Source: Trichoplax adhaerens (Eukaryota > Animalia > Placozoa). From it: DNA of 64,000 bases. The stretch spans positions 558,001-622,000 of the forward strand of contig NW_002060954.1 of assembly GCF_000150275.1 (NCBI RefSeq), given 5' to 3'. The notes beneath the pieces were generated by a model, which was not told the origin of the DNA, did no database searches, and saw only the letters and a list, made by a program, of their open reading frames with translations. This document shows positions 21,992-63,850 of the stretch, one piece after another (position 1 is the first letter of the stretch; each line of letters opens with the position of its first letter). A program made the translations under genes and the position numbers.

Positions 21992-24900
21992 ATGATCCCC
22001 AAATTTTATATTTTCCTCCTGGTAATATACTCTTTGACAGGTAAAGATAGATTAAAAAAAGCCTTATCATATTACAACTAAATGCTTACAATTTCAGGCT
22101 TTATTCAACAGCATCAATAATCACAGATAAGTATCCTTTTTATAATGCAATTAGATCATCAGAGAGTCTATTACCAATAAAAAAGTAACAATTTATTCGT
22201 AAACTATATAGCGAACTTCGTCTTGCTGTTAATATTGCTTTCGCCTGATAGATAAATGATTTAATTAGTGAGAAGTTAAAGAATCAGAAATCATTACTTC
22301 TCCACAATAACTATGTCATAACAATGATCATCATTATAATGACCACGGGAACAACCAGTTTATGTACAGATTTCATCGTTCGAAGTCGCCATTTCTCTTC
22401 ACTCTATTGAATTATCTATCCACTATTTTTACACAGTAAAAAGAAATTAAGAATATTTGTTTTAAACCATCCGAAATTGTTTGACAAGATTTTTATTTTA
22501 GTATCTCGCTTCTTTGAAATAAGGAATATTACTAAAAGCTAAAAACATATAGACACTAAGAGCGGTATCAGCACACCATCTTTATGAGTACTCCCTCATT
22601 TGAGCTGCAATATACAATTACAGTATATCTCACTTGTTGGCTTACTTCTAACATCACCTCTAAATATTCGTTACCATCATGAACTTCATTTAAACGAAAA
22701 TTTGGGGATTAATATGAAATCCGCTATAAACATGTGAAAAATAACGTATGCACCCATTTGGCCGGTTGCATATATTCGTTAATAATCTATTTTTAATAGC
22801 TATATAAATGTATCGTTATCTACCTTATCCTTAATATATTACGTATACCGTATACGTGTACCATGTACATAAAATTCTATTAGTAAGATTTAACAGTTTA
22901 TATCCTGATAACGATTAGAAAATTACATTATTGGTAACTTCTTGGTTAAAGTACCCGGCATAACATGAGATTATGTACGAAAAATACATTTTACAAATGA
23001 GCACGTAAATCATCTATTATCTTGTATTATTTAGCATGGGGACAATGTCCTACCCAGTGCTCATGTCCTAATTCCCATACAATCTCCTGTACTGGACCAA
23101 ATATTACCCAAATGCCAACTGGATCAGATATTGTGGCTGGTGCTCGAGTATTGTGAGTGTATTTATTTAATAACTTGATAAAAATATATCTATGTGTCTG
23201 CATTAATCTAAATAAAGTGAAGAAAGATTATTGATTAAATATGATAGTAAGGCTAAAGTGAATAGATAGATGATCAGGTATGCATTTTTATAATTCTAGC
23301 ACTCTTAAGATGAGACTAATAATGTCTTGCTTCATGCATACTTAGTCTTATAACTCTAAATTAATGCTACTTGGTTATTCAAAGTCTTATATTTGATTTT
23401 ATAAGCTACATTTCTGATAACCTTTCCATAAATCAAAATTTTAAAACGCTATGTGTTGTATTTATATCTATTTTACATATATAAATACCTCTTAAATGAA
23501 ACTGAATTAAAGGTTTGTAAAGTATCTTGAGTTTTGTGTAAAAACTTGTTTTCTCCTTTATTAGCTATCTGAAAAACACGGCTATAACAACAATTGCTGC
23601 CAATAGCTTCCTCAACTTTGCCAATATAACAGAATTGTATGTATTCTTGATATAGATATTTTAGATTCATGTCAACTGGTCATTTACCCTTGAGTTCTGT
23701 TGTAATATTATTTCCCTTTCACAGAACCATCTCCAACAACCTTATGTTGGGCAGTTTCGATGTGGGTGCTTTTAATGGTCTAAGTAAATTGGAAATACTG
23801 TAAGAAAGCAAGTCAATAGATGACGATAATTTAAAATGCTTTCTATAAATTAAGTACAAAGGAGACTTATTTTAGTTGAGTTAGGGTATTTAGTTTACGC
23901 TTTACCTAAACAGTTAAATGACCTACTTTATAACCGAAATAAAATAAATTGGAGCAAAACGATATAAATTCCAGTTACCCTAGATGTGACTAAAGTCAGA
24001 AAATGAATCACCGTGATACAAAGAAATAATTTATTTAATTAATATTGATTATTGCATTATCAATTCTACCGTTACGTTTTAGCCTTGCCACTAATAATAG
24101 ACTAAGTCAAATTGGTAACGGCGTTTTTAATGGCCTTAACATGGTTAACACGATGTAAGATTTTCATATTTAACACAATTACTGCATAGTTCTTTAATTA
24201 TACAGAAAGCTAACATTTACGTAAAAAATCTCATAAAGGTAACTTCTTGATTCAGGTCTATAAAGCGTTAACACATGATATTTATAAAACTTTTTGAATC
24301 GATAATTTTATTATAGAGATTTAAGTCATAACGTCATTGCTAGCCTGGATACTAAAGCTTTCAACTTCACTACTAAACTTCAAACTCTGTAAGGCTAGCC
24401 ACACCGCTACTGAATATTTAACTTACAGTATAATACGATAAATTAAAATCAGTAAATTAACAACCTGAAAGAAAGTTGTGATTTAACTAATATGACTATT
24501 AGGCAAGAAGTTAATCCAAGAAGAATAATCTTAATCATTTATTACAATAAACAACGAAGATATGTTAAATTTTCATTAGGATTCTTATGATAGAATTCAT
24601 GATATTAATTTTATAACAGTGTATTGACAAATAACACTCTACAAACCATTCAAGCCAATACATTTCAAGCCTTGAGCCAGCTATCGATACTGTAATGGCA
24701 ATAAGAGAATGATTGAACTATCTAAAAAGATTTGTTTATAATTACATTATAATCCACTAATGACATTCAACCAATGCAGCCGACTATATTCAATTTAAAT
24801 TTTAAATTAGGAATATCGATATGAATCAAATCACTGCATTTGCCGACAATGCCTTTACCGGACTTGTTGGATTAAGCATCCTGTGCATAAACTAAAATTT

Positions 24901-27900
24901 GCTTTACATAAAGTTTTTCAGCTTTTTGAACTGAGATTGCTATAGAATTTTAATTGACTCTCGCTTAATAATTTGTTAGTCGATTGTCCGACAATATGCT
25001 GACATCTTTAAAGAATGCAACATTTGCTGGAATTGGAATAAGTTTATCAACGCTGTAATACCAATTTATGTCTGTTTTTAACTAGCCAATTCTTTGATCG
25101 TTTTCGAATGTATTAGGAGAAAGACTATACCCACCTATACATCTACTTTATCTTCATTCTCTAGGTCTGTGAATAATAATCTTTTATCCTCAATTGAGCC
25201 CGGATGCCTATCTTCTTTCACTAGGCTAAGATCATTGTAATATAAGCTAGCTCTCCTTTATAATAATTTATTAATTTAAATTATTTAACTAGTAAATTTC
25301 AAATACACCACACTACAGCATTAATTTTTGTTTAGGTTTATGCTTCTTAATTTTTCTAAAGTAATCAGCGCCTTAGTTGGTATTATTTCGAAAATAGCTG
25401 CAATTCGCAATACTATTTGATTTTGATTCTCAATCGGCTTTATAATTTATTTGTTCATCACTTACTGTAGTTATTACCTTTACGGATAAAAACAAATATC
25501 AATATCATATAAATATTTACAATCTAGAATAGATCGACACATAATTGCGTTAAAACGTAAAGTGAATATTGTACGAATCAACATTTTTTATCACTTTCAT
25601 ATGAATACGATTATTATTTCAGAAAATTAGTAAAACTTATAAAATAGAACAAGTATAGATTGTTAAAACCTATGATGGACTTCGTAATCGTCCGATATTG
25701 ATCGTATCTATCTGATTAATTATAGGTACCTAAAGAATAATTCTTTGAATCAACTTCAAGACGGATCTTTTGGGAGCTTAACTCGATTATTTACTCTGTA
25801 AATTGATACCATAATTTTTTCGTTAGTCATTATGCTTCGATATCAGAAATATTAGTCTGCTACAGGCTTAATGAAGTGAAAAAAATACTATTCCATTTTA
25901 TTGTCAGTAGTAAAGTTGCAGATCAAAAAACAATTAAGATGTTTTGTAAAATACAACTATTAATTGCATTATCTTCTGTTTTTATATTATGTAACAGAGA
26001 TATCAGCTACAACAGGCTTATGGTCTTTAATAGAAATATACTGGGGAGCGCAAGCAATTTAAGGGGACTGTATGTTGACTATATGTAGCTTTGAGAGCTG
26101 ATTGTATAATAATTATAGTGTCTATTAAATATCAGAATTTGTAGATTCTGTAAATTATATTTTTTATCAATATCAAGTAAAGTAATTATAATAGCCAACC
26201 ATGTCAAAGTAGTGCACGTCAATAAAAATACTCGAGACAAAAATTTACTGCTATAGATGTACATACCCGTATTACGAAAGGGCATAGGAATAACACTATT
26301 AGAGTATTAGATTTCTTGCTTCTGTTTCTCTTCTTGTAACATTGTCACGACTAATTTAAAGAAAACTGTAAGTAACATATAATAACTTAGAGAAATTAGT
26401 GTGGTCTTAAAATTTTCATGACTTGGTAAGAAAATTATTTACTAGTTTTTGTTTTCGTGTGACTGCTAAACATTAACTATGATTAAATAGATGGGAAAAT
26501 TACTGATTTGCCACTATATAATTTCACATTTACCAATGTGCCATTACAAATTTCATATTTACCAATATGCCATTGCACTCATTTCCTTTCGAGGAAGCTT
26601 CATTACCTGAGATAACTCGCCTAGTTCCCGCGTTGTGCTAAGTCACCTTGATAATTTACTAGCATCGCTAAAGTTTTCCGACATATTTTTAAAATTAAAT
26701 TACGTCTTAATTCATTAGATAGTGGTATTTGTAGCTCTTTCTACAGTTCAGAAGTAATAAATCGTATGTAGTTTCTAATTGAAATGAACGATGGAAAAGC
26801 AATATATTGTTCTTGAGATATAATGAAATTTCAATATTCTTCGAATCTTTGAAGACGAAATTTTAGAATACTCGATGATACATATCAGCTTGATGCTCAT
26901 AACCATTGAAATCTTGCTAAATAGACCGATATCCTTATTCTAACAGCTATCTTAATGGAAATAAATTATCTAACTTTAATGGCACCGGATTTAAAGACCT
27001 AAACAGATTGTCAGCATTGTATGTATTTGCTATTAATTTATGCAAGAATTTTTAATTTTGACTGCTGTGATAAGAACTATTATGAAAACATTTTATAAAT
27101 ATTCTCAAGGATTGATATTTTTAATTCATATAATAAAAATACCAAAGACTTTCTTTTATTAATTTTTCAAACGAAAGGTACTTGGATCACAATGATTTTA
27201 CATACATCAAGGCTTCAGATTTTAGTCAACTTAAAATACGATCTTTGTAAGTAATAATTTTATAACCGTGCGTGTTTGTAGGTACTGTATATATCATAAT
27301 ATAACGCATACTACTACTACATATACTTAATTACTGCACATGACATGATTAAATTTTTAATTAAATAGGTTACTGACACTATCAGTAATTTCTATTAATA
27401 TACTTTTTATCTTTCAATTTTAATAAAAATTATAATGGCTTATATGAGTTTAATGTGATATTCAACAACATGGCTGCAGTAATAATTAATACATTACTAA
27501 TTTGCTAAAAACTTGTTAGTAGAGAGTACATATCTCAATCTAATCATTCTATCTCATGTTTTATTATAGCTTTAAAACTTGATGTAATAAAATACCGTTT
27601 ATTTGCTTTGAGTGTCAACATTGTCGAGATTTTAGCTTAGTAATAGGCTATGAATTTATATTCTATTTACATCACGTATTGTATAAAGTGAAATTTATAA
27701 TCCATTTCTTAATAAACATTTTAAATGTTTCTAGAACTATGAGCCACAACAAAATAGAACAGATTGAGAATCAAGCATTTGCTGGAATGACTTTCCTATC
27801 ACAACTGTATGTTGCTACTGTAGTAATTCGCCTGCTGTATAAACTAGAATACGGTATCAATTATCAGGTTAAAATCACATGCGGATAGTACATCAGTATT

Positions 27901-29713
27901 TTGGTTAATTAATTAATTTAGCTATTTAAACGTTTTTATATAAATAATTTCACCATTAAAAATAGAACTTAGCATTTCTTCTCGAGTGACTGGAGCCCAC
28001 TGCTTATTTAAAATAAAATAATTTTTATCCTATAGAACTCTCTCTTACAATAAAATTAAAACTGTTACTGCCGATACCTTTCATCAATTATCTGGTCTAT
28101 TTACATTGTAAGAATTTAACTTTCTACTTTTTCTAAAGTGAAAGCCGATAAATAATATATTTCGAGATATATCTATTCCTAGAAAATTGGACTATAATAA
28201 TATTAGCACAGTAGCAGCTCGAAGTTTTGGAGCGATGCAACGTTTGACATCGATGTGAGTTAACGATTAAAATATCGTCATTCATATCAGCGTCTGTAAC
28301 CAAATTACTTTATTAATAGATGCTGTTACTGTAATGATCTAAGTTATCGCTCACTATTTCTATAATGGAAATCAAATCTTTTCGTTTATACGATATTACA
28401 GATATCTGAATAGCAATAACTTGATGGCCATCAAAAATGATACCTTTTCTGACGCCGTCAACATTGGATCTCTGTAAGTAAAAGATTTTAGAATATTTTA
28501 AACAGTTTCCTACATAAATTCAGAAATAATGAATTCTATCGGTTCTAGTAACCCTATTGCAATTGTTGTATTAAGGTAGTGCTAATAATTTAATAGATTA
28601 TCTTTCACTATCGATATTAGTTACTTACAAAATAATCAAATCAGAAATATTGACGATCGATCTTTCGCATCTATGAAAATGTTACGAACGCTGTAAGTGA
28701 TTAATTACCAGGTTATTATAATGCGTTTATCAGCTTTTTAATAATTGTACTGATTTTCCTTGATGAAAATATTGATATTGTGTGATGAATCTTGTTAGTG
28801 TACTATGTATATGTTAAGAATATTTTTAACATTCTTGATGATCACCACTAATTCCAACCAAAATTTCAAATCAAATCAAAATAAGAAATTTATCCTATAA
28901 CCAAATTTACGTGATTAATGATAAAACGTTTGCTGGTTTAGAAAATCTTAACACGATGTAAGAATTTTAATGTTTGAGAACTTAATAAGAATGGAGCGTA
29001 ATTTATGGCTTATTTTTCGATGACTTATATTGATGAGTGATGTAAAAATTACATGCTAATAGTATCAATTTATGCGTTTAATATTTAAAACTACAGAAAT
29101 CTGAATGCAAATCCACTGATATGCGTTTCGTCCAATGCATTTATCAACGCAACTAATCTGAGAGATGTGTATGTTGATTAATCATTTCTTTAATTTTTAC
29201 GCTAGCGTCTTTACGCATTCAATGTGGCGACTCACCTACAAGGGGGTTGATTTATTGTAGTGACTACTGCTAGATTACCATGATTTTCTTTTCTTAGGTA
29301 TGCCAACTTCAATCAAGTCTGCTGTGCTACACTCCCATCAACAACAGCATGCTCAGCAGGAAGCTGTGCCAATAATGCAACTATCTCCTGCAATAGTGTA
29401 ACAGTATCAAGTACTAGGTCAGTAGAAATAATCATAAACCTCTTAACAGCTGGATATTGTTATAATATGGATATATCTTCCTCTATTTGATAGACTGTAT
29501 GAGTAATAAAATTTGATGGCTAATTCAAGAAAAAATATTTTAATTTAGTTTTCAGTACTACTTGTACTTATGATTTAAATTCTTTGCGTTCGCGATAGAA
29601 TTACAATGATCGGAACTGGTACCATTGGAGCTGCAGTGTCGTCAAATATGTTAAATAGCGAGATCCCTGTAATTTTAGGTTCTCTAATATTAGCTTTGTT
29701 ACTGCAACGCTAA
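21992..29713 (+). CDS. Predicted GPI-anchored leucine-rich repeat cell-surface protein (~590 aa): signal peptide, LRRNT, 19 LRRs, Cys-rich cap, Ser/Thr stalk, GPI signal; 23 exons
   Basis: Signal exon 21992-22040 (MIPKFYIFLLVIYSLT+AWG); LRRNT exon 23035-23152 (QCPTQCSCPNSHTISCTG). LRR exons start at 23565, 23725, 24083, 24317, 24620, 24811, 24980, 25165, 25726, 25998, 26947, 27178, 27735, 28036, 28183, 28402, 28621, 28886 and 29097; each is 69-75 nt, phase 2-2, LxxNxI..F..L..L. Cap exon 29298-29417 (YANFNQVCCATLPSTTAC...). Last exon 29599-29713 ends IPVILGSLILALLLQR*. Confidence 0.9.
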
Positions 29714-30337: not shown

Positions 30338-30865
30338 CAGTACTGTACTGTACTGTACTGTAGGTGCCGATGTACTGTAATGTACAGTAGGTATACTGTA
30401 TTATGTTAGTTAAGCTGTCATTCGGTTTGCATGCGGTTCCAACCGAACCTTTGATATGTCTACCCTACTGATACATTTTAGATATGCCAATATTAAGTTT
30501 TTCTTTTTAGATATGTCAATACAGCATGCTGTAAACTGTACTGGACAGTGTACCGTATGTACAGTATAGTACAGTACAGCACCAAGCAATTTGGAGGTCT
30601 TCATGGTCTGGCCTGGATCTTGGTCAGTAGAATACTGTACTGTACAGTACAGTCGATAGAATGCAAAGATTACAGTACAGTGTACTGTACACTCTAGTGC
30701 ATCCGACTGTAAAGTGTACAGTACAGTACTGTACGTACAGTATACTGTACACTGTAGTAGAGACCCAAGTGTACAGTACACTGTACTGTACAGTGTACAG
30801 TACAGTGCAGTATGCAGTTACTGTAAGCCATAAACTCTAGGCAGTACAGTACTGTACTGTACACT
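30338..30865. repeat. (TACAG/CTGTA)n array upstream of GPR143
   Basis: Very dense pentamer units just before the probable 5'-UTR exon (donor at 31200, acceptor ending 31876). Confidence 0.85.
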
Positions 30866-31882: not shown

Positions 31883-34800
31883 ATGAGTTCCGTTCAGTTA
31901 GCACTTTTTTGTTGTGCTAATTCGTCTTTAAAAACGGATGATCTGATCAATTTCTATCCTTTTGCATACAACGGTCTATGTGCAGGAGTCAGTTTAATTA
32001 GTATGTTCGGCGCTCTCTACACCATTTTCCTTGGATATCGACATCAAAGCAATCAATCAAGATCGCCTGAAAACCATGGAGAGATTGATCAACATTCCAC
32101 GACACCATATAACAGTGATATTTGGGAGAGGAGTGCAGCATCTTCCAATCAGTCTGCTACCAACAACGAATCATATTTAAATCATCGTAAAATAATTTAC
32201 TGGTTAACAATTGCCGATTTCTTAGCTGTATCTGGTAAGATGATCTAGGGATAACGATAAGTCAATATTTTCACTTATTCTGTAATTATGCAATGTACTC
32301 GTTTAAATTTTCTGCAATGCAGGTCGATTTTTCCATATCCGTAATATGTAGCTTCCGTAAGCGATTTACGTACGGCATGGCAGCTAGTAATAACTGCAGC
32401 GGTTAATTTACTGGCGTAATTGCATGCTTTCGTGTAACGGTAACGAAATTATGACTGCTACGACCAATATCAGTCTATACGTTGTAGTGATAGGTTACGC
32501 TTAGATAGAATTGAGCCCACTGCATACTGTATGTACAGTACTACATAAATAGAATACATTTTACTTGTCTAAGAAGAGAATTTGCAGGCACAAAAATATT
32601 CACGGTCGTTCTACTACGTCATATCTCGCTCCAACGCGAATTTGAATCCTAGGAAATCTACTATATCGTACTACCTAATAATTGAAGACTACTGTTTCAG
32701 CCATACTCAGATTTTATATGATTAGTTTTACGTCTTTGCATGGCGTGACTTACTTCACTTCTCCTTTATTTTCAATAGCTGTGCTGATTAAATCTGTCCT
32801 ATGGATGGTACTGTTTAGAGGTTATATTTTGGAAATTCCTACACAAGACGGCTCCAGTGTAGGCAATTTACTCTGTGCTATACTAGCTGTAAGTCCATAT
32901 GCACTTATATAGTATATTCTTATGTAGCAATTCCCCGATTCATTGTTTTGTAATGTAATCATTTAGTAACAACGATATTTGTTCCTATCATAGTGCATAA
33001 GATTGTGTCATAATGTCAGGACACAGCTAACTGATACTGTACATAACTAATTGAGATGATGTAAAGTGATGATAAGATACCGTGCCATTTTAACTTTTGA
33101 TAAACCGCAAATTAGTCTTTATTAAGATCCATATCTGCACAATAGCAATTGTTGCACTTTGCAGGTAATGTACTAGAAACAATAAAATACCTCATTTCAC
33201 AGGACTTTCAGAGATTTGTTGATGATTTTATACAGTACAATGCATATCGCGTTCAGTTAAATATTAATATTCTAAAAGCACTAATCACATTCTTCGCATT
33301 ATACTGTAATGCTTACTTTTAAATTGATGCAGGTACTTGCATTGATTACATAGTATTAAGGTAATTACATTAACATCGGTGTAATAGATTGGTATCAATA
33401 CGCTTATCAAGATGTATTTTTGTAAAGAAAACTGATGTTAGTAATTGTGAATCAAATACAAGTTCATCTTGACCATTCTTTTGTTTTGTGCCTCAATTTG
33501 AAGTACCGTTACCGGAATAATATGAGTTTGTTTAACAATGAACCTAAAGAGACCTATTTTAAAAGCTCCACTATGATAGCTAGTAATAAGCGAGAAATAC
33601 TGGGAAATAGAATGAAAATCGGCGCAGTAAAGTTACTTTACTAGCTGTATATTAAAAGTAACACACAAACTGCGCCTGTAGAAAATCTTGCCTTAATTCA
33701 GTCTTAATTATTAAGACAAATTACTAAAATACACTGCTTACTTTTTACATAATATCGCAAAGCTCATATTTAAGTAAGGAAATTTACAATATACTGTAAT
33801 GAGATTATGAGTACGTAAACCTAAAATAAATAGTGTAATATTTCTTGTACAGACCGTAATACGCTTCTTCTACACTGCTACTTTCTTTTGGACATTATGC
33901 TACGCTGTGGAAGTCTACCGAAAAATCGTACGTAAAGATGAAAGGAAGTAAGTTTCAGAGTTTACTATCATTTCACATTTATTTTAACTGATCTTGTACA
34001 GCATGACTAGAAAGCCATACTTATGATTTATATCATAATACTTGTCATAGCTAGGGTAGCTAACGGAAACTTATTTCACCATATTTTAAAATCATGCAGT
34101 TATGCGATAACTCACTTTTCATTTTTGCTGTCATAGTTACCTGTATTATTACCAAATCTTTACATGGGGCCTTTCAACTGCCTTAGTCAGCGCTAGTGCG
34201 ATAACACTTTATAATCCTGGGTTAAAACGGTAAACTATTGATTAAGTCATTTAATATTCTAAGAGCTTATCATATAGGATATTTTTGCAATACATTAGGC
34301 AACACGGTACAAATATTTCACGTACTAAATTAGTCATGATGACTATAGTACCATATTTAACTGTACTACGAACTGTACATAACTTGTCAAATTGCCCTTC
34401 TAGAATTGAAGTGACAATCAACTGTACCATTACTTCTAAACAGAGCTGAAATAAATATACAAAATTATTCTCTTGCTATCCTACTAACCTCAATAATCTG
34501 ATTTACTTTATAAGGTGCTACAATAACATCGATTTGCTTTTGCTACTGTATATGACATGTTATTTGCCAGCTCTTTTGGTTATGATACTAATTCCAATTT
34601 TCTATTATTTTGTATCTCGAGAAGGTAACGTGAAATTTATCAATTCAGTATTGAGCTCATTGATTTCATTCTTTAACAGAAAGAGTAAATGTGGACATAA
34701 TATACTAGCGGATACTTTCATGCTCCCGTAACGAATATCGTGTTAATAATTAATCATAATGTAATGACGAGATATTCGTTGAATTCACTCAATCTATCAC

Positions 34801-35705
34801 ATAGCTTATTTTCTTTACTGTATCTGCTAATGTAATAGTGCATTCATCAAGAATAATTTTGTGCAACTTTTAGCTATCTTCGTAGACATAAAGAGACAAC
34901 TGCATGTTATAAAAATGTATACATAATAGTGAAAATTCTCAATAGACCAAATATTATTTTTTTGCTCATTTATGTCGCTAGTGCAACCTATGATTGCAGC
35001 TATCAATGGAGAATTCAATAATCAACTGCGTAAGAGAATAGAATCACTGCGGTGGAAGTTTCGGATGATTGTTATTATTTTTTATATTTGGTAGGTATCA
35101 ACTATTGATGTAAATTTCCATTAAGGATGTAGTTATTGAATACATAGCTTAAGTTTGCATGGACAAGCATCGCTGATATTTAAATTAATCCTATACAATA
35201 TAACGTAATAAAATTGTCGGAAATAACTGCAGCTATGACGGATAGATCTATATGCAGGAAAAAATGGAACAGAATGCATACTATACTAAGAGAAAATCAT
35301 CTATTTTTAAATTTGATTAATGGGTTTTACTTATTTTAATAGCTGGGTACCCAATATCATTGAATGTTTCTTTGTATATACCGATGCTCAAGATTTCAAG
35401 CTTGTATTATGGATGGTTATGGTTAGTCCTTTATTTTCTTTTCATCACATTGTTCCTTTAGGGATATTCTTTATTAAATGTAACTCTCAAGAAAGGTGCA
35501 AGGAAGATTATGTATCTTTTGTCATACAAATTAACATGACAGTTGGATTCGTATTTATTGTACGGTAATCATATAGGGTTTAGTAAATCCATTGCAAGCG
35601 TTGCTGAATGCCTTTGTTTACCGAACTGATACTCACCTAGTACCCGTAAGGAGATATAGAAGAGTTCCATTCAGTGATGGAGAAGAAAATTCAATAATTT
35701 CTTAA
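31883..35705 (+). CDS. GPR143: G protein-coupled receptor 143 (ocular albinism 1) orthologue, 8 coding exons
   Basis: The N-terminus MSSVQLALFCC...INFYPFAYNGLC matches OA1 MASPRLGTFCC...LSFQPRAFHALC. It continues ADFLAVSAVLIKSVLW, FYTATFFWTLCYAVEVY, YQIFTWGLS, LYNPGLKRC, YMTCYLPALLV, ICWVPNII, WMVMGLVNPLQALL, giving seven TM segments collinear with OA1. Exons: 31883-32234, 32779-32888, 33853-33947, 34137-34229, 34515-34624, 34982-35089, 35343-35421, 35577-35705. Confidence 0.92.
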
Positions 35706-38512: not shown

Positions 38513-41500
38513 TCATTCATGGCCAGAGCGAGTCTTTTTTGAATGTTTCTTATTCTTAGCTGATCTAACGCTTTCTTCAAATGGCAGGCGATCCCTACTT
38601 ACGTAATCGCGTGATAAAATTTGTGATGTCCTCCATTGAGAATTTAATGCTAATTCCTCATCATTCCTGTCATAATGACCATCATATCCATCTTTTGGAT
38701 CTCCAGCACTTTTAGTTTCTGTGGTATTATGGCTGCTTTGTTGCGCACTTCCGTTAAATAGTGATCGAGATTTCTCGCTCTTTTTATCATAAAGTGGATT
38801 ATGAAGACCATTAACTGTGGATTTTCTAGGTCTAACTACACCGCTGGATCTATAACCACTTGAGGTAATGTTACTATCGTGCTTACTAATAGATGTAACT
38901 GAGGTATTTCTGGAAATAATTGAGTTATTGTGAGAAGGGAGTGGGTTCGAACGATTTGATTTCTTAAGCTTCTCTGAGCGTGTAGTTGTGGGTACTTCTA
39001 CAGAGATTTCGCGGTCTTGATATAAGTGACTACTATTATCAAAAGCAGAAGCAATATCTGGACCCGATAATTTAGCAGAAGGTTGAGAAATTGTACGTAA
39101 TTTATCTTTCTTCTGGAAAGGTAAATGAGAAATTTTATCTTCATCCGATGTGTAGTGTACAGCATGAGATGGCATTACTGATCCGCTCTTCTTATCATTT
39201 GGTAACCCTGTAGATTTCTGTTTTCGAGTAAAAATTCGCTTATTGATATCCTTTATAATGGTCGACGATATTTTAAGATCACTATTAGTTGTAATCCTAT
39301 CTTTAGGTTCCTTGTATTCTCTATAATTATCATTTTCATTTGTATAATTCCTCCGTTGAAACGTAGGGGAAATATGATCCAAGGACAATAAATGCGATAA
39401 CTCCACACCAGTGTTAGGCATATCATTACTAGTTGTTTCTGATACAGAATTAGTCAATCCTATGCCTTCGTTCATGGAATGGTGTTTCCTATAACATAAC
39501 TTTAGTGATATATGTTAATAACTTGAGCAACTGGCAATTAAAGCCGAAACTAATTGCATCATTACCTCTTCATGTTCCTTAAAATGTGTTCCAGGATACA
39601 ATTTTCTACAAAATTCGCAAGGAATAAATACATCATCTTCTATAGCAAAATAAAAAGGAATATAGCATAAGTAGAAAGACCGTTAATAAAGCGACTCAAC
39701 ATCGCTAAGAGACACGAATTATTAGTTAATAGGAAAATAATCCAGATTTCATAGCTGTAAAATATTTCATTAAAAAGGAGTAATATCGTACATTAGGATG
39801 ATATCAATATTTATTTGTATCATAATGGTAATTAGCAGTGCCTGGCTCACATTGTTACTGAAACCTCTAATCACTAACGGAAATAATTAGTCTTTAAAAG
39901 TAGTCGATCGACAGATATTACCACTAAATTATGTTCGAAAAATAGATACAGCGCACTTTACCCTGATCTCTAGGAGAGGTGCAAAATTCTCGACACTGGG
40001 AATGATGCGATGTGATATTGGAGCTTACATTGTCGTTGTTTTCAAGATCATTACACGTATTCGAAATTGATGTACGGCTCAAACGTTGCTCATTATAACT
40101 AGAGATATCCGCCAATTGTGCAGACTCATCCTCCAAAAGTTTACTATTATTTGATTGACCAAAAGTTGTTCGGAAGATATTATCGATAAATTTCTCATTT
40201 TCCTGTTGGTCCCATTTTATACCTTCTCTAACATCCGTCTCAAGTTCTGTTGTATTACGCGATGATGTTAGAGGCATATTAAACTTAGTCGTATTGTTTG
40301 TTGGGATATCTGCTGCTTGCATCGAAGATTCCTTAGATGAATGATCACGCTTTTTGCATACCTGTTTATCCTTACTGCTTGGAATGTTGTCTAATCCTGA
40401 CTCGGGGACCTCCGTATTTAATTGCTCATGTAATTGCATAGCGAATTTCCAATCAAGTTGTTCTTGTGCGTTAAGTGAGCTAATTTGAGGTTGAGAAGTG
40501 CCTAATGTTGAGGAAACGGTAGGATCTGCCAATTTTATAGGGTGCAAAGGTTTTGTTTTACTTCCTAATTGGTCAGCTGGAATAGGAACACGTCGAGTAG
40601 TGTCTCCAGAACTTGGATCTATTGCATCTTCGAAGTTATCATCATTAAGTTGCATGTGTAATGCCATCGCGTATTCATGATCTAATTTATCCTGATCTTT
40701 CTCTTTAACGCCAACATCCCCTTTGTCACGATCATGTACTTGCCGTTTATTAAAATTCTTGTTTTGAAAGTGACGTTTATTAGACGATTTGTTACGATCC
40801 AATTGATATAAAGTCCCTTCTTGGTTAAGAAGTGATTTTGGCCTTTCATAGTTTGTAGTTTTACGTACATCTATTTTAGTTCGATCATTACCGTATTGAT
40901 TGCTAGCATCAGTACGTGTAACAGCAGTCGCAGTAGACTTTTGCTTACTATCCGATTGGTTTGAGAAGCGTAAATCTTCATGACTACTGACAGCTCCATT
41001 AGTACCTATTCCGTTTTTGCCATATCGCAACTTAGGTGATCCCGGTGTTGACAAATACTGTCCTAAGTTTCTGTTTACTCGTACCACGCCTTGTTCATCA
41101 AATCGGTCATTTAGTGAGGCTTTATCATTGAGCTTTCCCTTTCTTCCACTATTATTTGCATTGCGTGTACCATCATCAGAGGCCTGAAGAGATTGCGAAT
41201 TAAGTGCGGGGATATTTTGATATAATGCCTCTGATGACGAAATTATATCGTCAATATAGTTGTTGGCTTCGGACTTCGTAGCATATCGTCTCAGCAAACT
41301 ATCAAGAGGGGTATTCCCAAACTGAATGTTTGCATGACTCGAACTGGTATCATTTTGCTTATTGGAGAGTTTAAGCTTTTGCTCCTTACGACTATCTTTA
41401 GATCTCAATTTTTGAATATCGTTTATATGTGCTGCACTACTACTATGTACGCCATCAACGGACTGATATGTTTCCTCGTTACCGAGTAAATTAGTACGAA

Positions 41501-43734
41501 AACTAGGATTTGCATCTTTATTGGCTAAGAAAGGTTTGCATGATCTTAAATTCTCAGCTTTACCCTCTCTATCCACGCAGTGTCCATTCGAAATGGTTTG
41601 ATCTTGTGATTTGTCTCGAGAAGCTTCCGCACTTAAATTCATCGAATTTGCTATTTCTCTTTTACCACAAATCATTCGATGACTTGCAGTATCTTTTAAC
41701 ATGATCAACTTTTCGCAGTAAGGACATTTGTCTGTACGAGCTCCACAAAATATAACATGGTTATCGAATTGATTAGCCTTTACTTCTATTTCACAGTAGT
41801 CACAAATCCTTAGTCTTTCAGGGCACAATTGTTTCTATTACAACCCAAAATTGAGTAGTATTATCAAAACAATACCATGTATTTAAAGTAATACGAATGA
41901 TGTACTGTACGGTATCCTACGATCGCAGTTTCTTATAGAAATTGTTGTAGCATAGTACTCGAACTTGCTACTTTCTGACTTCTGATTAACTATTATAGTA
42001 CAGATACTTGTATTTTCATTCCTCTGCTAATCGAAGCTATAGTCATTAGACTGTAAGTGACGTCGAGATTCTACTGTAATCGTAATTAAGAGATATGCAT
42101 TACTACTGCATCGACTACCAACATATACCAGTATACCACTCCTAACATTATAATTATTAATAAAATTGTCAATAATTTATTCATTTTTGATTATGATAAT
42201 TAATGGTTACAATTAGAGTACCACTCTAAAAATTAGATGTATAGTATACTGTAGCTGTATATGATTCTATGCAATATGTTGCTCTAACCTGGTGATCTTC
42301 CATTTCATATTTTTCCATAATTTGATCACATTTACTGCATTTTACCTAGATTTAAATTGGGATATTGAATGGATTATTACTTTCATTAAAAGTACCTGAT
42401 AATAATGAAATGAATTACTCTGCTCTTATGATTATGAATCAATTCATACGGACTTACAGATTTACACATACAAACTTGGGAATTATATTATGGTTAGATT
42501 GATAACAGTAACGAGTGACAATCGTAACTGCGTATAGTGTATCGTAATTTTACGAGCAGTTCACTATTTCAACCCTTTGTCTATCTCTTATAAATTATTT
42601 TAAGATAAACATGCTGTACTTAGTTAGTAATAACGGTTAAGCTAATTTCTTACTTTGATGTGATATTCTTCAAAGTGACTTTCTTCTTGAGTTTTTGCAA
42701 TGGGTTCGTGACATAATTTACAGTTAATGATATTACGGACACAATGTAGGTGATGCATTTGAAAATTTCTCGCAGGGATATCCCGAGCGCTGCAATCATA
42801 AGAATTTTGCAATCAACGAATGCAGGTTAGTAGACATCGTACAAAAAATGATTTAGATTTTCCAATCAGAAATTTACGCATGCAAAACTATCCTAAGATG
42901 AACTTCACCGGTTCTTAAGACTAACATAATATGAGGAAATGGATGAAATAGAAATGAAAATATTGATGATGAAGTACTGTTGACGCATAAATTGTTAATT
43001 TTCGGAAGCGATCTTGCAAAAGACAAATACGCATTACTACAGAATTCATTATAATAAGATGAAGAATTATCGTAAGGCGGTAAGCAATAAACATTACTAC
43101 TATACATAAGTTTAATCAAATTGCAAAAGCTGTTTTTGGTTAAGCAATTACTATGACTATTGAAATATTAATATTAAAGTGCCTAGTCATAGCTAACCAC
43201 GCGCATTCTTTTAATTCCTATAAAATGCGTTATCGTTTGGCAGTAGTGGTTTCATCAATTCTGAATCAAGGTACTGTACCGTGCTAGATCCAATGCGAAC
43301 AGCGCGAGGTACAGTACCCTATCAGTATCACAACGAAAATCAACGGTATGGTCTTTGTAGACAACGTTATCTGATGGAGTCGAAATTTAATGTCATATTT
43401 GACTAATCAAATTGCAGTAGAAAAGAGATGAAGTTATCATTTAGGATTCAAACTTGAAGGAAATTGAATACCTTACAAATAATATGATGTAAATGATTCT
43501 AATTAACTTATCCAGCGAAATCGAAAATAAACAACACTAGCATTAGGAAACGAAGTTTTTTAGAAGAAATTTTTCATGATATAACTCATAGATTGAATAC
43601 GTTTAGCAATCCATAATAATTTAATAATCATAGCGATCAGTTAATAAAATATCGTACGGTAACTCCAACATCATAATCATTCAGCTGTATCCTTACCAAT
43701 TAACGCAGTGCTCAGTCTCTTCCTTTACTTCCAT
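38513..43734 (-). CDS. TRAFD1: TRAF-type zinc finger protein of the TRAFD1 (FLN29)/XAF1 family with long low-complexity regions, 6 exons
   Basis: MEVKEETEHCVNCARDIPARNFQMHHLHCVRNIINCKLCHEPI..HFEEYHIKVKCSKC..CPERLRICDYCE..HVIFCGARTDKCPYC..HRMIC is the TRAFD1/XAF1 N-terminal zinc-finger array. A late finger FIPCEFCRKLYPGTHFKEHEELC is also typical. Whether it is closer to TRAFD1 or XAF1 cannot be resolved by eye. Confidence 0.82.
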
Positions 43735-43981: not shown

Positions 43982-44133
43982 TAGTACTGAACTATGAATG
44001 ATTGTTAGTAATTATTAATAAGTCGTACAGTAGTACTGTACTATGAATGATTGTTAGTAATAATTATTAATAAGTCGTACAGTACTATGAATGATTGTTA
44101 GGAATTATTTATTAATAAGTCGTACAGTAGTAC
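43982..44133. repeat. Minisatellite, 3 copies of ~45-52 bp (actatgaatgattgttagtaattattaataagtcgtacagta)
   Basis: Three near-identical tandem units ~250 bp upstream of the TRAFD1-like ATG. Confidence 0.9.
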
Positions 44134-44274: not shown

Positions 44275-44600
44275 TACAGTACAGTAACGAATTAGTACTT
44301 GAGCCTGACAGATTCACGTTACATTTACGCCGTGGGTAAAATAAATTATATCTCGTATCCAATACCTCAAGTAATAATTTTTCACTTGTAGCCGTAAGTA
44401 ATAAATTTCGACGTCCTGTGCATAACTCGAAGGACTAAAATATTTCATCGATAGAAAGCCAAAAAGTGCTGACGTTGTCATAAAGAGTGACAACACATGC
44501 AAACGGTGGACCAACAAGCGTACTGTACTGTACTGTACGGTACATTCACAGTTCTGTAACTGTACTGTACGTACAGTACAGTACTGTACAGTAGTGTACA
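44275..44600. repeat. (TACAG/CTGTA)n array upstream of the TRAFD1-like gene
   Basis: tactgtactgtactgtac...gtacagtacagtactgtacagt, densest at 44520-44600. Confidence 0.75.
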
Positions 44601-45238
44601 GTTCTATAAATAAAATAAAATCGACAGTATGGTGCAGACGTGCGTCAAAGATTCTGTATCACAGTCACTTGTTATATAACAGTGAGTATATTCACAACTA
44701 TGCTATTAAATTGCTTCTCCGATGGTATTCAAAAGTCAAGCACTTTATAAGGGTGGGGATGACAGTAGCGTAATCATATAGTATAGTAATCCGTCAGCAA
44801 CGCGACGGATGATTGTACTAGTAATAATTAATTGACACCGCGAACGAGTAGTTCATTGATCGCTCCTTATACTTCGCGTACTTAAACTTTACTGTACATA
44901 GTACAATTTATCACTGACTCACAACTATCCCTGTCGTTTCTATACTTTGGATTTGACAGTATTCAAAAAATTAATTACTGTAATAGCTCAGTGGAGAAAA
45001 AAAGAAGCTGTCATTGGCACGATATGGTGTGCGGGTCTGGCTAGTAAAGTGGGCGGGAACAATATACAGTACTGTATATTCGGAGGATCTGGTAGCGCTT
45101 ACTGTTTTCTCTTCAGTACTCACTCAATCTGATCTCAAGTTCGAATGAAGTCATTTGAAAACGGTTTTCATTATTAATAAAATGTTAAATAACGCTACTT
45201 GAATTAATTAATAAGGGTCATTTAAATCAATATTTAAC

Positions 45239-54312: not shown

Positions 54313-54660
54313 TGTACTGTACAGTCTACAACCGCCCTTCTGCTGTACAGTACAGTAAAGAATTTAATTTAAATCAAATTAAATTCACTTTTCAGGGAAC
54401 TTCAGCGCCGAGATAGCTGAGAAAGAAAGTGAAGTTGCAAACACGCCTGTTGGGCAGTGTTCACATTCCAAGTCTCTATGTTACAGTCCATGCAAGAGTC
54501 TGCACTGTACTGTACAGTACTATACTGTACCGCAATGCAATGGCGGGAGTCCATTCAAATTTAAATTAAATAACTTTTAAAAAAGTACAGTACTGTATAC
54601 AGTACACTAAGTACAGTACAGTACAGTACAGTGTACTATATAATACAAAGTACTGTACCG
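54313..54660. repeat. (TACAG/CTGTA)n array upstream of BRIP1
   Basis: Pentamer runs 110-460 nt upstream of the BRIP1 ATG, mixed with E2F/CHR-like motifs. Confidence 0.8.
54541..54565. promoter_or_regulatory. Candidate E2F + CHR (DREAM/MuvB) element in the BRIP1 promoter
   Basis: TGGCGGGA, a 5-nt spacer, then TTCAAA TTTAAA, ~340 nt upstream of the ATG of a DNA-repair gene. Confidence 0.5.
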
Positions 54661-63029: not shown

Positions 63030-63850
63030 TACTGTACTGTATGTGCAGTACGTACCGATGTTACACCCTTTTATTATTATTATTTATTTATAGGTACTGT
63101 ACTGAAATGTACCGGCATCGGCATGGCGGAGAGACTGTACTGTAAGATTGATATAAGGATTGAACAAAAAGAATTTTATTTATTATTAATCCAGCTGATT
63201 ACTGTGTGATTCGATACAGCCACAAAATTAGAATAACTTTTTTTTAATATGCAGTATATATTAAGTTAAGTTAAATGAAATAGTGATAACACAATCAACG
63301 CCAATACAGTACTTTCATCTTACGTGTACAGTAATAAGATGTGAAATACTGTACAGTACAGTATTTGCACCTGAGCATGCAAAGTGTACAGTACTGTACG
63401 TACAGTACAGTAAAGTACAGTATACTGTAGTGAAAGAGAGAGTCAGAGATGGAGGCTGAATGTACAGTACTGTACTGTAGTGTAGATTAGATTTGATGAA
63501 TATTCAGCTACACGGATCGTTTTTAGCAACTGAAATTAATTAATAAGAATTAGGTATGATATCCTAGATAGAGAGTTTTCCCGATACGTTCAGCATGCAG
63601 CCCACCAATAACAGGAAAATACTTGTATTTTAGTATTTTATTCCTTTCTATTCACAATTGCACCATAAAACTTAGAAAAATAATCCGTAAATTTGTTTAT
63701 GAGCAGTGCCAAAAATAGTACTGTACTGTACTGTACAGTACACTACACTGTATAGTACAGCGTACAGTACAACAGATTAAAATTTGCAGTATTATACCAA
63801 CAAAACATTGATTGCGAATGCTACAGTACAGACTACAGTAGTACAGTAGA
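63030..63850. repeat. (TACAG/CTGTA)n array near the window end
   Basis: Pentamer runs at 63030-63145, 63345-63480 and 63715-63850. Confidence 0.8.

Follow-up and report, generated by a model that had tools for sequence, protein, structure and literature searches.

The diversity of agnathan variable lymphocyte receptors (VLRs) is generated by somatic, gene-conversion-like assembly and not by splicing. GPI-anchored ectodomains composed of LRRs only are known from the Nogo receptor, CD14 and Drosophila chaoptin and connectin, and these proteins need a partner in order to signal. In gonadotropin-receptor genes and in the LRR-ROCO genes of brown algae, the LRR exons are about 72 bp long, the introns are all in phase 2 and each exon encodes one repeat (PMC11378527); according to the same study, the brown-alga ROCO genes undergo exon shuffling and alternative splicing with transcript support. 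Trichoplax adhaerens has 46 LGRs, 41 of which are placozoan-specific and have many LRRs (2022 review, PMC9545775). In Trichoplax sp. H2, LRR-only proteins with a C-terminal TM called solely by Phobius have been listed, and three of them are encoded in tandem (PMC6321704).

Here, we describe an LRR gene on the + strand at positions 21992-29713 of a 64-kb stretch of T. adhaerens DNA (the window). By exon scan and model check, the gene has 23 exons and every splice is GT-AG. The predicted CDS comprises 1773 nt and 590 codons, and a frame check of the spliced model found zero internal stops. Because about 8% of random codons are expected to be stops in DNA of about 31% G+C (our estimate), 590 open codons over 22 splices are not a chance outcome. 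The initial annotation had claimed 19 exons of one LRR each, and its counts are exact in this open model: 16 exons of 72 nt, two of 75 nt and one of 69 nt, with phase 2 in and out throughout. A cassette scan gave no matches on the reverse strand, in the remaining approximately 54 kb of the window on both strands, or in 20 shuffles. The locus is an intact, real gene for a cell-surface LRR protein, and its expression and each of its splice junctions are predictions. Its features are as follows, with splice-site percentiles from a PWM whose reference is 142 one-LRR exons from paralogous genes:

21992..22040, +: exon 1, start codon and signal peptide (beginning MIPKFYIFLLVIYSLT), phase 1 at its end; donor CAG/gtaaag
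23035..23152, +: exon 2, LRRNT cap CPTQCSCPNSHTISC with a 4-Cys pattern and the beginning of the first repeat; acceptor at the 79th percentile
23565..23636, +: LRR1 exon, 72 nt, phase 2-2; position-conserved with LRR1 of the paralogues (L.NTA..T..ANSF.NF.N)
23725..23799, +: LRR2 exon, 75 nt, phase 2-2 (exon scan, model check)
24083..24154, +: LRR3 exon, 72 nt; weakest acceptor by PWM, 1st percentile
24317..24388, +: LRR4 exon, 72 nt (exon scan, model check)
24620..24691, +: LRR5 exon, 72 nt; weak acceptor (6th percentile) and weak donor gtaatg (1st percentile)
24811..24882, +: LRR6 exon, 72 nt; donor gtgcat, the weakest
24980..25054, +: LRR7 exon, 75 nt (exon scan, model check, PWM)
25165..25236, +: LRR8 exon, 72 nt; carries the lone Cys 240
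25726..25797, +: LRR9 exon, 72 nt (exon scan, model check)
25998..26069, +: LRR10 exon, 72 nt; the next intron has 877 nt and contains a dispersed repeat
26947..27018, +: LRR11 exon, 72 nt; weak acceptor, 4th percentile
27178..27246, +: LRR12 exon, 69 nt; acceptor caaacgaaag, 23rd percentile and thus ordinary
27735..27806, +: LRR13 exon, 72 nt (exon scan, model check)
28036..28107, +: LRR14 exon, 72 nt (exon scan, model check)
28183..28254, +: LRR15 exon, 72 nt (exon scan, model check)
28402..28473, +: LRR16 exon, 72 nt (exon scan, model check)
28621..28692, +: LRR17 exon, 72 nt (exon scan, model check)
28886..28957, +: LRR18 exon, 72 nt; purine-rich acceptor, 5th percentile and thus truly weak
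29097..29168, +: LRR19 exon, 72 nt; family-typical Cys (N.NPLIC.SSNAF)
29298..29417, +: cap exon, 120 nt, YANFNQVCCATLPSTTACSAGSCANNATISC, then the start of the S/T linker; phase 2 at exit
29556..29598, +: alternative 3' acceptor ttttcag/TAC in the last intron; the protein would end in STTCTYDLNSLRSR and a stop, with no anchor signal
29599..29713, +: tail exon, 115 nt, S/T/G linker, candidate omega region GAA / SSN, 14-residue hydrophobic stretch IPVILGSLILALLL, QR and stop

The encoded protein agrees with the order proposed in the initial annotation, i.e. signal peptide, LRRNT, 19 LRRs, Cys cap, stalk and a hydrophobic end of GPI type, with no 7TM region. Judged by rule of thumb only, the putative signal peptide has a basic residue (K4) and a hydrophobic core of 11 residues, with small residues at -1/-3 ahead of QCP. 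The LRRNT exon has the C-x3-C-x-C-x7-C pattern and matches Pfam LRRNT weakly (E 0.0014; 18.6 bits, under the 25.8 cut-off). Pfam LRR_8, which is independent of our own profile, is matched by 11 of the 19 LRR exons taken singly (best E 3.3e-4). The repeats share 9-35% identity and are therefore old. In the 590-aa model, there are 12 N-x-S/T sequons and 11 Cys, and the N-terminal signal and residues 574-588 are the sole hydrophobic segments. The Ser/Thr stalk is present as claimed, but it has just about 24 residues (NSVTVSSTRITMIGTGTIGAAVSS). The cap exon has no match in Pfam, and no chain was matched when the cap profile was compared with PDB sequences. The C-cap is not an LRRCT and has a CC..P..C pattern of the LGR-hinge kind.

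Public protein sets seem to lack the gene or to have it in incomplete form only, and a corrected gene model therefore has some annotation value. With the cap exon (39 aa) as query, a large HMMER search of 1.84 billion representatives gave no matches, not even to its own gene; little weight can be given to this negative result, as even a representative with 50% identity would not have reached the threshold. Nor did a word search yield a candidate when the query was the open frame of 68 aa that surrounds the cap exon. A second copy or haplotig, sought for analyses of polymorphism or dN/dS, was not found in the genome search.

The initial annotation had also proposed a genome-wide search for paralogues with the same exon phases. 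An LRR-profile search of the 105.6 Mb T. adhaerens genome, combined with reading of the loci, gave at least 150 exon-sized LRR matches and six paralogues of the same build. Together with the gene described here, the resulting family comprises no fewer than seven genes without a 7TM, of which five lie in tandem at C1410:366-412k and one lies at C1389:499-506k. All six paralogues have an LRRNT exon, single-LRR phase-2 exons, an 'N.L.C' last repeat and a CC cap exon that exits in phase 2; the last repeat reads 'N.L.C[VI]SS.AF' in 6/6, and scans found a 69-nt LRR exon in most of them. While a genome search with the single cap exon matched only itself, a search with the cap profile returned exactly the seven family loci, and CC, C, C, C are invariant in all seven caps. 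The LRRNT, the phase-2 LRR exons, 'N.L.C', the CC cap and the hydrophobic C-terminus are all found in the present gene. Because colinearity between its internal repeats and those of the paralogues is not clear (z -0.3 to 3.0), its assignment to the family is based on LRR1, LRR18-19, the cap and the general build. The gene is a divergent, solitary member: its cap profile score is the lowest of the family (E 7.7e-9, 43 bits, versus 58-74 bits), its cap is the shortest (39 versus 47-49 aa) and lacks the last Cys, its stalk is much shorter, and it has 19 repeats versus roughly 11-15 detected per paralogue, which is a lower bound. The C1410 and C1389 paralogues are probably among the 'LRR + TM' candidates described for strain H2 by Kamm et al. 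2019 (PMC6321704).

The placozoan LGRs are similar in architecture. A genome search with Pfam 7tm_1 was swamped by ordinary GPCRs, and an LGR 7TM exon, which is a rhodopsin-family 7TM (E 3e-23), was used as query instead. This census gave about 50-60 copies in the genome, with none on contig C1403, which carries the gene, none at C1410:356-416k and none on C1389. A verified LGR at C1413:9583-9613k has the same single-repeat phase-2 build, with about 59 LRR-exon candidates versus 19 LRRs in our gene. Like placozoan LGRs, the gene has an LRRNT and one 24-residue LRR per 72-nt phase-2 exon, and its cap has the CC..P....C...C motif of their hinges. Unlike them, it has no 7TM exon and stops at 29713, a separate exon encodes the hinge-like cap, after which come a linker and a hydrophobic end, and there are extra Cys in the last LRR and in the cap. 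The best solved match of the LGR hinge profile is RXFP1 residues 379-413 (E 0.0014), and when seven caps and nine LGR hinges are aligned together, CC, C and C are conserved without exception. Comparison of cap and LGR hinge by hhalign gave P 0.0033 but a probability of 9.7% over a short alignment of 29 columns. At the level of the motif, the family cap thus resembles the initial portion of the RXFP1-type hinge in the many Trichoplax LGRs.

Based on these data, we suggest, with a probability of about 0.68, that the gene encodes a constitutively or nearly constitutively spliced, 590-aa surface glycoprotein that is most likely GPI-anchored and belongs to a 7TM-less placozoan family. In this model, removal of the signal peptide would leave an LRRNT cap and a curved solenoid of 19 'typical' 24-residue LRRs, followed by a C-cap rich in disulfides and then by a short S/T/G linker; the C-terminal signal would most likely be swapped for a GPI anchor. 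The family would then consist of LGR-like ectodomains on a lipid anchor. The function of the product is purely a matter of inference: we infer that the concave face binds a protein or peptide ligand, and that a partner membrane protein might be engaged for signalling or ligand trapping, in analogy to CD14, the Nogo receptor and GFR-alpha. The arrangement of one LRR per phase-2 exon reflects the growth of LRR arrays by exon duplication and does not point to a splicing device.

The mode of membrane attachment depends on the last intron. The hydrophobic end of GPI type that the initial annotation had described is there as a 14-residue stretch, but it requires acceptor 29599, which is outscored by acceptor 29556. 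By inspection, this end resembles a GPI signal, with the small residues GAA/SSN, a 9-residue spacer, IPVILGSLILALLL and QR, and the protein is probably anchored in this way. If the last intron were joined to 29556 instead, the protein would have a 14-residue end (STTCTYDLNSLRSR) without a hydrophobic tail and would be secreted, or both forms would be made and anchoring would be regulated by acceptor choice. Soluble LRR ectodomains are common, and by PWM both 29556 (80th percentile) and 29494 (71st) score above 29599 (39th). We nevertheless consider a secreted product unlikely. The tail exon keeps 37 codons open and finishes in a clean hydrophobic stretch, and we estimate a chance of about 5% for this number of open codons at the local base composition. 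Moreover, of the six paralogues, at least four (L001, L002, L007 and L011) finish with an S/T/P stalk and a hydrophobic C-terminus, and it can therefore be argued that selection keeps the tail.

In these same four paralogues, the stop follows directly after the hydrophobic stretch, which also argues against a type I membrane protein in which this stretch stays as a helix with QR as a two-residue cytoplasmic tail and is not exchanged for GPI. Such a topology would agree with the Phobius 'SP+TM' calls on H2 LRR proteins by Kamm et al. (PMC6321704) and with a 19-residue window of Kyte-Doolittle >1.6 at residues 570-571. However, the hydrophobic core has just 14 residues and is at the extreme C-terminus, GAA and SSN are small residues 9-12 positions upstream as in GPI signals, and the tandem H2 genes have no TMHMM TM call (PMC6321704). 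We therefore regard a transmembrane helix as quite improbable here.

The initial annotation had gone further and proposed that the gene could be a recognition receptor diversified by splicing. In this reading, splicing would omit the 19 symmetric LRR exons, as cassettes, in many combinations, and a single gene would give a repertoire of receptors with different concave faces, a splicing analogue of lamprey VLR or insect Dscam. The premise that any subset of LRR exons can be skipped in frame is true: all 210 junctions of a donor with a later acceptor are in frame and never create a stop, and a hydrophobic residue is kept at the junction (L 169, I 17, F 16, M 7, V 1). Weak splice sites could allow regulated skipping and, as a consequence, surface receptors with differing binding faces, perhaps also in the six paralogues and in LGRs. 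The two purine-rich acceptors that had been named as skip candidates both exist and 28886 is weak, but 27178 is not, and weakness is not specific to them: equally low or lower scores are seen for acceptors 24083, 26947, 24620 and 24980 and for the donors of LRR5-8. Some of the low scoring stems from the fact that the PWM was built from other genes. In brown algae, the 72-bp, phase-2 LRR exons of ROCO genes have been suggested to be alternatively spliced (PMC11378527), and for placozoans, which have no canonical TLRs, LRR-only surface proteins have been proposed as recognition modules (PMC6321704).

By contrast, at least 150 exons of the genome are symmetric in this way, including those of hormone-receptor-type LGRs and of the six paralogues, and the symmetry is therefore not informative about this gene in particular. 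Dozens of receptor genes in Trichoplax are normally built with one repeat per exon, and the initial annotation was right to caution that this structure is also normal in constitutively spliced genes. In addition, the low identity among the repeats leaves no trace of recent cassette duplication, the terminal repeats are position-conserved among paralogues, the introns contain no alternative or mutually exclusive exon copies, and the diversity of the family visibly comes from gene duplication (five tandem genes) and not from within one gene. If skipping were regulated, an animal from the base of the animal tree, without canonical TLRs, would have a recognition repertoire generated by splicing. 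The case for such a repertoire comes down to exon symmetry, which is general in LRR genes here and elsewhere, and the finding is therefore far less surprising than it first seemed. With symmetric exons general, the repeats old, and neither flanking cassettes in the window nor an LRRCT, a splicing-diversified, VLR-like receptor is unsupported rather than refuted, and we consider it very unlikely.

Finally, it is extremely improbable that the gene is the 5' part of a longer receptor in which the cap exon is spliced to a 7TM exon, either the GPR143-like one 2.2 kb downstream or that of a distant LGR: the cap resembles an LGR hinge and there is one in-phase AG at 31886-31887, just past the GPR143-like start codon, but about one such AG is expected there by chance, contig C1403 lacks an LGR-type 7TM exon and the paralogues are 7TM-less too. 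A fusion with the downstream 7TM ORF at 31883 (GPR143/OA1-like) was rejected, as its own Met aligns to position 1 of the Ocular_alb profile and the frame is closed two codons upstream. By homology, this ORF is a separate GPR143/OA1-like gene.

If the model of a constitutively spliced, GPI-anchored ectodomain is right, Trichoplax has a small family of lipid-anchored LGR-like ectodomains beside its very large set of LRR-GPCRs. We speculate that such proteins could be co-receptors, decoys or adhesion molecules for the LRR-GPCRs' own ligands. A bipartite TLR-like receptor has been discussed for placozoans (PMC6321704), and these proteins are further candidates for its 'extracellular half'.

Compared with known systems, the gene shares with agnathan VLRs the order of signal peptide, LRRNT, LRRs, C-cap, stalk and GPI-type signal. 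Unlike a VLR, the germline gene is complete, with 23 exons and 19 fixed repeats; no LRR cassettes that could correspond to flanking donor arrays are present elsewhere in the 64-kb window on either strand; and the C-cap is not an LRRCT. Given acceptor 29599, the short S/T/G linker and the 14-residue hydrophobic end with small residues upstream may correspond to the Thr/Pro-rich stalk and GPI signal of a VLR. The build of one repeat per phase-2 exon is shared with gonadotropin-receptor and brown-alga ROCO genes, although proteins and lineages are different. By functional analogy, an LRR-only ectodomain on a lipid anchor would place the protein beside the Nogo receptor, CD14, chaoptin and connectin, with a cap that differs in type from the LRRCT of the Nogo receptor.

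The 23-exon LRR gene at 21992-29713 (+) of the window is real and was well described in the initial annotation, and its predicted sequence suggests that the product is probably a GPI-anchored LRR protein resembling the ectodomain of an LGR, i.e. of an LRR-containing GPCR with hinge and 7TM. The window (C1403:558001-622000 in an assembly of 105,631,681 bp and 1414 contigs) is AT-rich (~31% G+C) and its introns are small. Scanning for units of 63-81 nt that are preceded by AG, followed by GT and open in phase 2, we identified 19 exons of LRR shape within 23565-29168. As originally claimed, 16 of these are 72 nt, two 75 nt and one 69 nt long, and all 19 begin and end in phase 2. Together with four further exons, they make up the joined CDS:

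From ATG at 21992, + strand: first exon, 49 nt
Upstream of the repeats, + strand: LRRNT exon (N-terminal LRR cap), 118 nt
29298-29417, + strand: Cys-rich cap exon, 120 nt
29599-29713, + strand: tail exon, 115 nt

The joined CDS of 1773 nt has 590 codons and no internal stop, and all 22 introns are GT-AG. It was used for frame, composition and hydrophobicity; searches were run exon by exon. A control scan with the 19-exon profile gave no hits on the reverse strand, elsewhere in the window on either strand, or in 20 shuffles. Independently of this profile, 11 of the 19 single exons match Pfam LRR_8, and the LRRNT exon has a weak match to Pfam LRRNT (E 0.0014). A permissive search of the long introns detected no further or decayed LRR exons, and searching the organism's own genome revealed no second copy or haplotig of the gene. 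The intron that separates LRR10 from LRR11 is long (877 nt) because it contains a dispersed repeat of ~90-100 bp (26482-26582), which has at least 12 other copies (78-90% identity) on many contigs and may be a small mobile element.

The caveat originally attached to the symmetric one-LRR exons, i.e. that they are normal in other genes, is borne out genome-wide: the 19-repeat profile matches at least 150 full-length single LRRs of exon size, spread over many clusters. For instance, the cluster at C1413:9583-9613k has 59 LRR-exon candidates followed by one exon carrying hinge and 7TM, and this gene is one of the placozoan-specific LGRs described in 2022 as “with an unusually high number of LRRs” (PMC9545775). 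With an LGR 7TM exon verified as rhodopsin-family (E 3e-23) as query, we found ~50-60 LGR 7TM exons genome-wide, in line with the 46 LGRs published for T. adhaerens (PMC9545775). Similarly, gonadotropin-receptor genes have phase-2 introns and a single LRR per similar-sized exon, and the LRR exons of brown-alga ROCO genes are 72 bp long and in phase 2 (PMC11378527). Several small contigs (C866, C922, C935, C939, C987, C1288 and others) have match scores equal to those of spots on large contigs; they probably represent haplotigs of LGR clusters that were left unmerged, and could serve to compare alleles of the genes therein.

A genome-wide look for genes with the same exon phases, as envisaged in the initial annotation, yielded six paralogues in addition to the LGR clusters. 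One of these non-LGR genes is at C1389:499-506k, and five are arranged in tandem at C1410:366-412k:

C1410:366001-412000: tandem loci L001, L002, L003, L010 and L011, LRR genes that lack 7TM and encode a CC cap followed by an S/T/P stalk and a hydrophobic C-terminus

In each paralogue, an LRRNT exon and ~11-15 single-LRR phase-2 exons were detected, the latter number being a lower bound. The final repeat contains a Cys (“N.L.C[VI]SS.AF”), and the cap exon (“NF..aCC..P....C......C......C”) exits in phase 2; next come a stalk rich in S/T/P and a hydrophobic C-terminus. The paralogue regions contain no ORF of at least 120 aa and no LGR 7TM exon. The stalk of L011 (6144-6413), the fifth tandem gene, is a mucin-like run of ~70 residues. 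A second LRR gene near the C1389 paralogue (L008, C1389:515500-519000) has at least 14 single-LRR exons and extends past the stretch read; its cap is not matched by the family cap profile, and LGR 7TM exons are absent from its contig.

The window's gene and the paralogues have in common the first repeat (L.NTA..T..ANSF.NF.N), the last repeat and the cap, and a seven-cap profile recovers exactly seven loci genome-wide. Thus, the window's gene belongs to a group of at least seven such Trichoplax genes. Within this group, its cap scores lowest (E 7.7e-9), its internal repeats have no significant one-to-one match in the other six genes (z from -0.3 to 3.0), and the pairwise identity among its own repeats is only 9-35%, so that we regard it as a member that is old, divergent and solitary. 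The group has been partly noticed in the literature. In Trichoplax sp. H2, Kamm et al. (2019) described LRR-only proteins that have a signal peptide and, according to Phobius only, a TM segment; three of them are in tandem. The authors proposed that such proteins could supply the outer half in a bipartite TLR-like receptor (PMC6321704). Orthology between these proteins and the family described here is a lead.

The predicted 590-aa protein has a signal-peptide-shaped N-terminus (MIPKFYIFLLVIYSLTAWGQCP), 12 N-glycosylation sequons and a single other hydrophobic segment, IPVILGSLILALLL (residues 574-588), after which only QR precedes the stop. The small residues GAA and SSN lie 9-12 positions upstream of this segment. 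In the paralogues L001, L002, L007 and L011, the frame ends directly past the hydrophobic stretch, a statement that covers these four loci, the end of L010 being ambiguous and the tail of L003 not identified. Based on the shape of the C-terminus and these abrupt stops, we consider a GPI signal more likely than a membrane helix. Splice sites were scored with a matrix derived from 142 one-LRR exons at the paralogous loci; being trained on other genes, it somewhat lowers the scores of the window's gene. By this matrix, the tail acceptor at 29599 is at the 39th percentile. It is outscored by rival acceptors at 29556, 43 nt upstream (80th percentile), and at 29494 (71st percentile). Splicing to 29556 would end the predicted protein after 14 residues and without the anchor signal. 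As to the putative GPI signals of the paralogues, L001, L002 and L007 have a common motif, “A[WN]xNQ[LI]” (KANQIM, AWTNQL, AWANQL), directly before the hydrophobic end, which may be a conserved omega-site region; this motif is absent from the tail of the window's gene.

It was proposed that the LRR exons are cassettes from which splicing makes a receptor repertoire. In-frame skipping of any subset of these exons is indeed possible: each junction splits the codon for the conserved hydrophobic residue of the repeat, and every one of the 210 joins of a donor to a later acceptor encodes L, I, F, M or V rather than a stop. The repertoire idea leans on an exon symmetry that is common to more than 100 exons of the Trichoplax genome; it is unsupported, and we consider it very unlikely. 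Of the two purine-rich acceptors highlighted as candidates for skipping, 28886 is weak (5th percentile) while 27178 is ordinary (23rd), and acceptors about as weak or weaker are present at 24083 (1st), 26947 (4th), 24620 and 24980 (both 6th); the donors of LRR5-LRR8 are at the 0-3rd percentile. The weak sites are at most a hint of possible exon skipping and do not single out two cassettes.

Downstream of the gene, the window contains the following features:

31883-35568, + strand: GPR143/ocular-albinism-1-like 7TM gene of several exons, from Pfam Ocular_alb and TM-like ORFs
38513-39475, - strand: second low-complexity ORF, 320 aa, just downstream of the zinc-finger ORF and on the same strand
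39924-41828, - strand: long ORF in a single exon, encoding a TRAFD1/XAF1-type zinc finger at its N-terminus (Pfam PF21366, E 8e-10)

Across the window, recurrent microsatellites of the (ACAGT)n / GTACAGTAC type and derived minisatellites lie at 2091-2237, 30671-30807, 43982-44133, 44520-44602, 54583-54632 and 63386-63422.

The multi-pass ORF at 31883 (+), 2.2 kb downstream of the LRR gene, was rejected as its 7TM exon and is a separate gene because its own Met aligns to position 1 of Pfam Ocular_alb (GPR143/OA1) and the reading frame is already closed two codons before this Met. This first ORF (31883-32248) matches Ocular_alb positions 1-58 with an E of 6e-5, which is below the cut-off, and more TM-like ORFs follow at 32682-32912, 34534-34731 and 35320-35568. 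In the whole-genome search, contig C1403 had no LGR 7TM exon. In the ORF at 39924-41828, the zinc finger precedes ~580 low-complexity Ser/Asn/Lys-rich residues, and the array at 30.4-30.9 kb yields spurious Tyr/Ser/Thr/Val-rich ORFs on both strands.

The layout of the gene had been likened to that of the agnathan variable lymphocyte receptors (VLRs). VLRs owe their diversity to somatic assembly rather than to splicing. The likeness holds for the order of modules; by contrast, the germline gene in the window is complete, no LRR cassette arrays flank it on either strand of the 64 kb, and its cap is not an LRRCT, the C-terminal LRR cap, according to Pfam. The gene is not a member of the VLR family.

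The cap itself seems to be missing from public protein sets, since the cap exon had no matches, itself included, among 1.84 billion representative proteins and a word search with the 68-aa open frame around it gave none. In an alignment of the seven caps with nine LGR hinges, CC, C and C are invariant, and both groups have the motif “CCx[VI]Pxx[VI]TxC ... [ST]Cxn[IV]L”. Comparing the cap and hinge profiles gave a P of 0.0033 across 29 columns, but the hhalign probability was low (9.7%), and the best solved-structure match of the hinge profile is human RXFP1 residues 379-413 (E 0.0014). Unlike LGRs, the family has an extra Cys in the last LRR and another in the cap, and these two may pair with each other. 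Given the alignment and the RXFP1 match, it is reasonable at the level of motifs to regard the family as LGR-type ectodomains in which an anchor would replace the 7TM domain.
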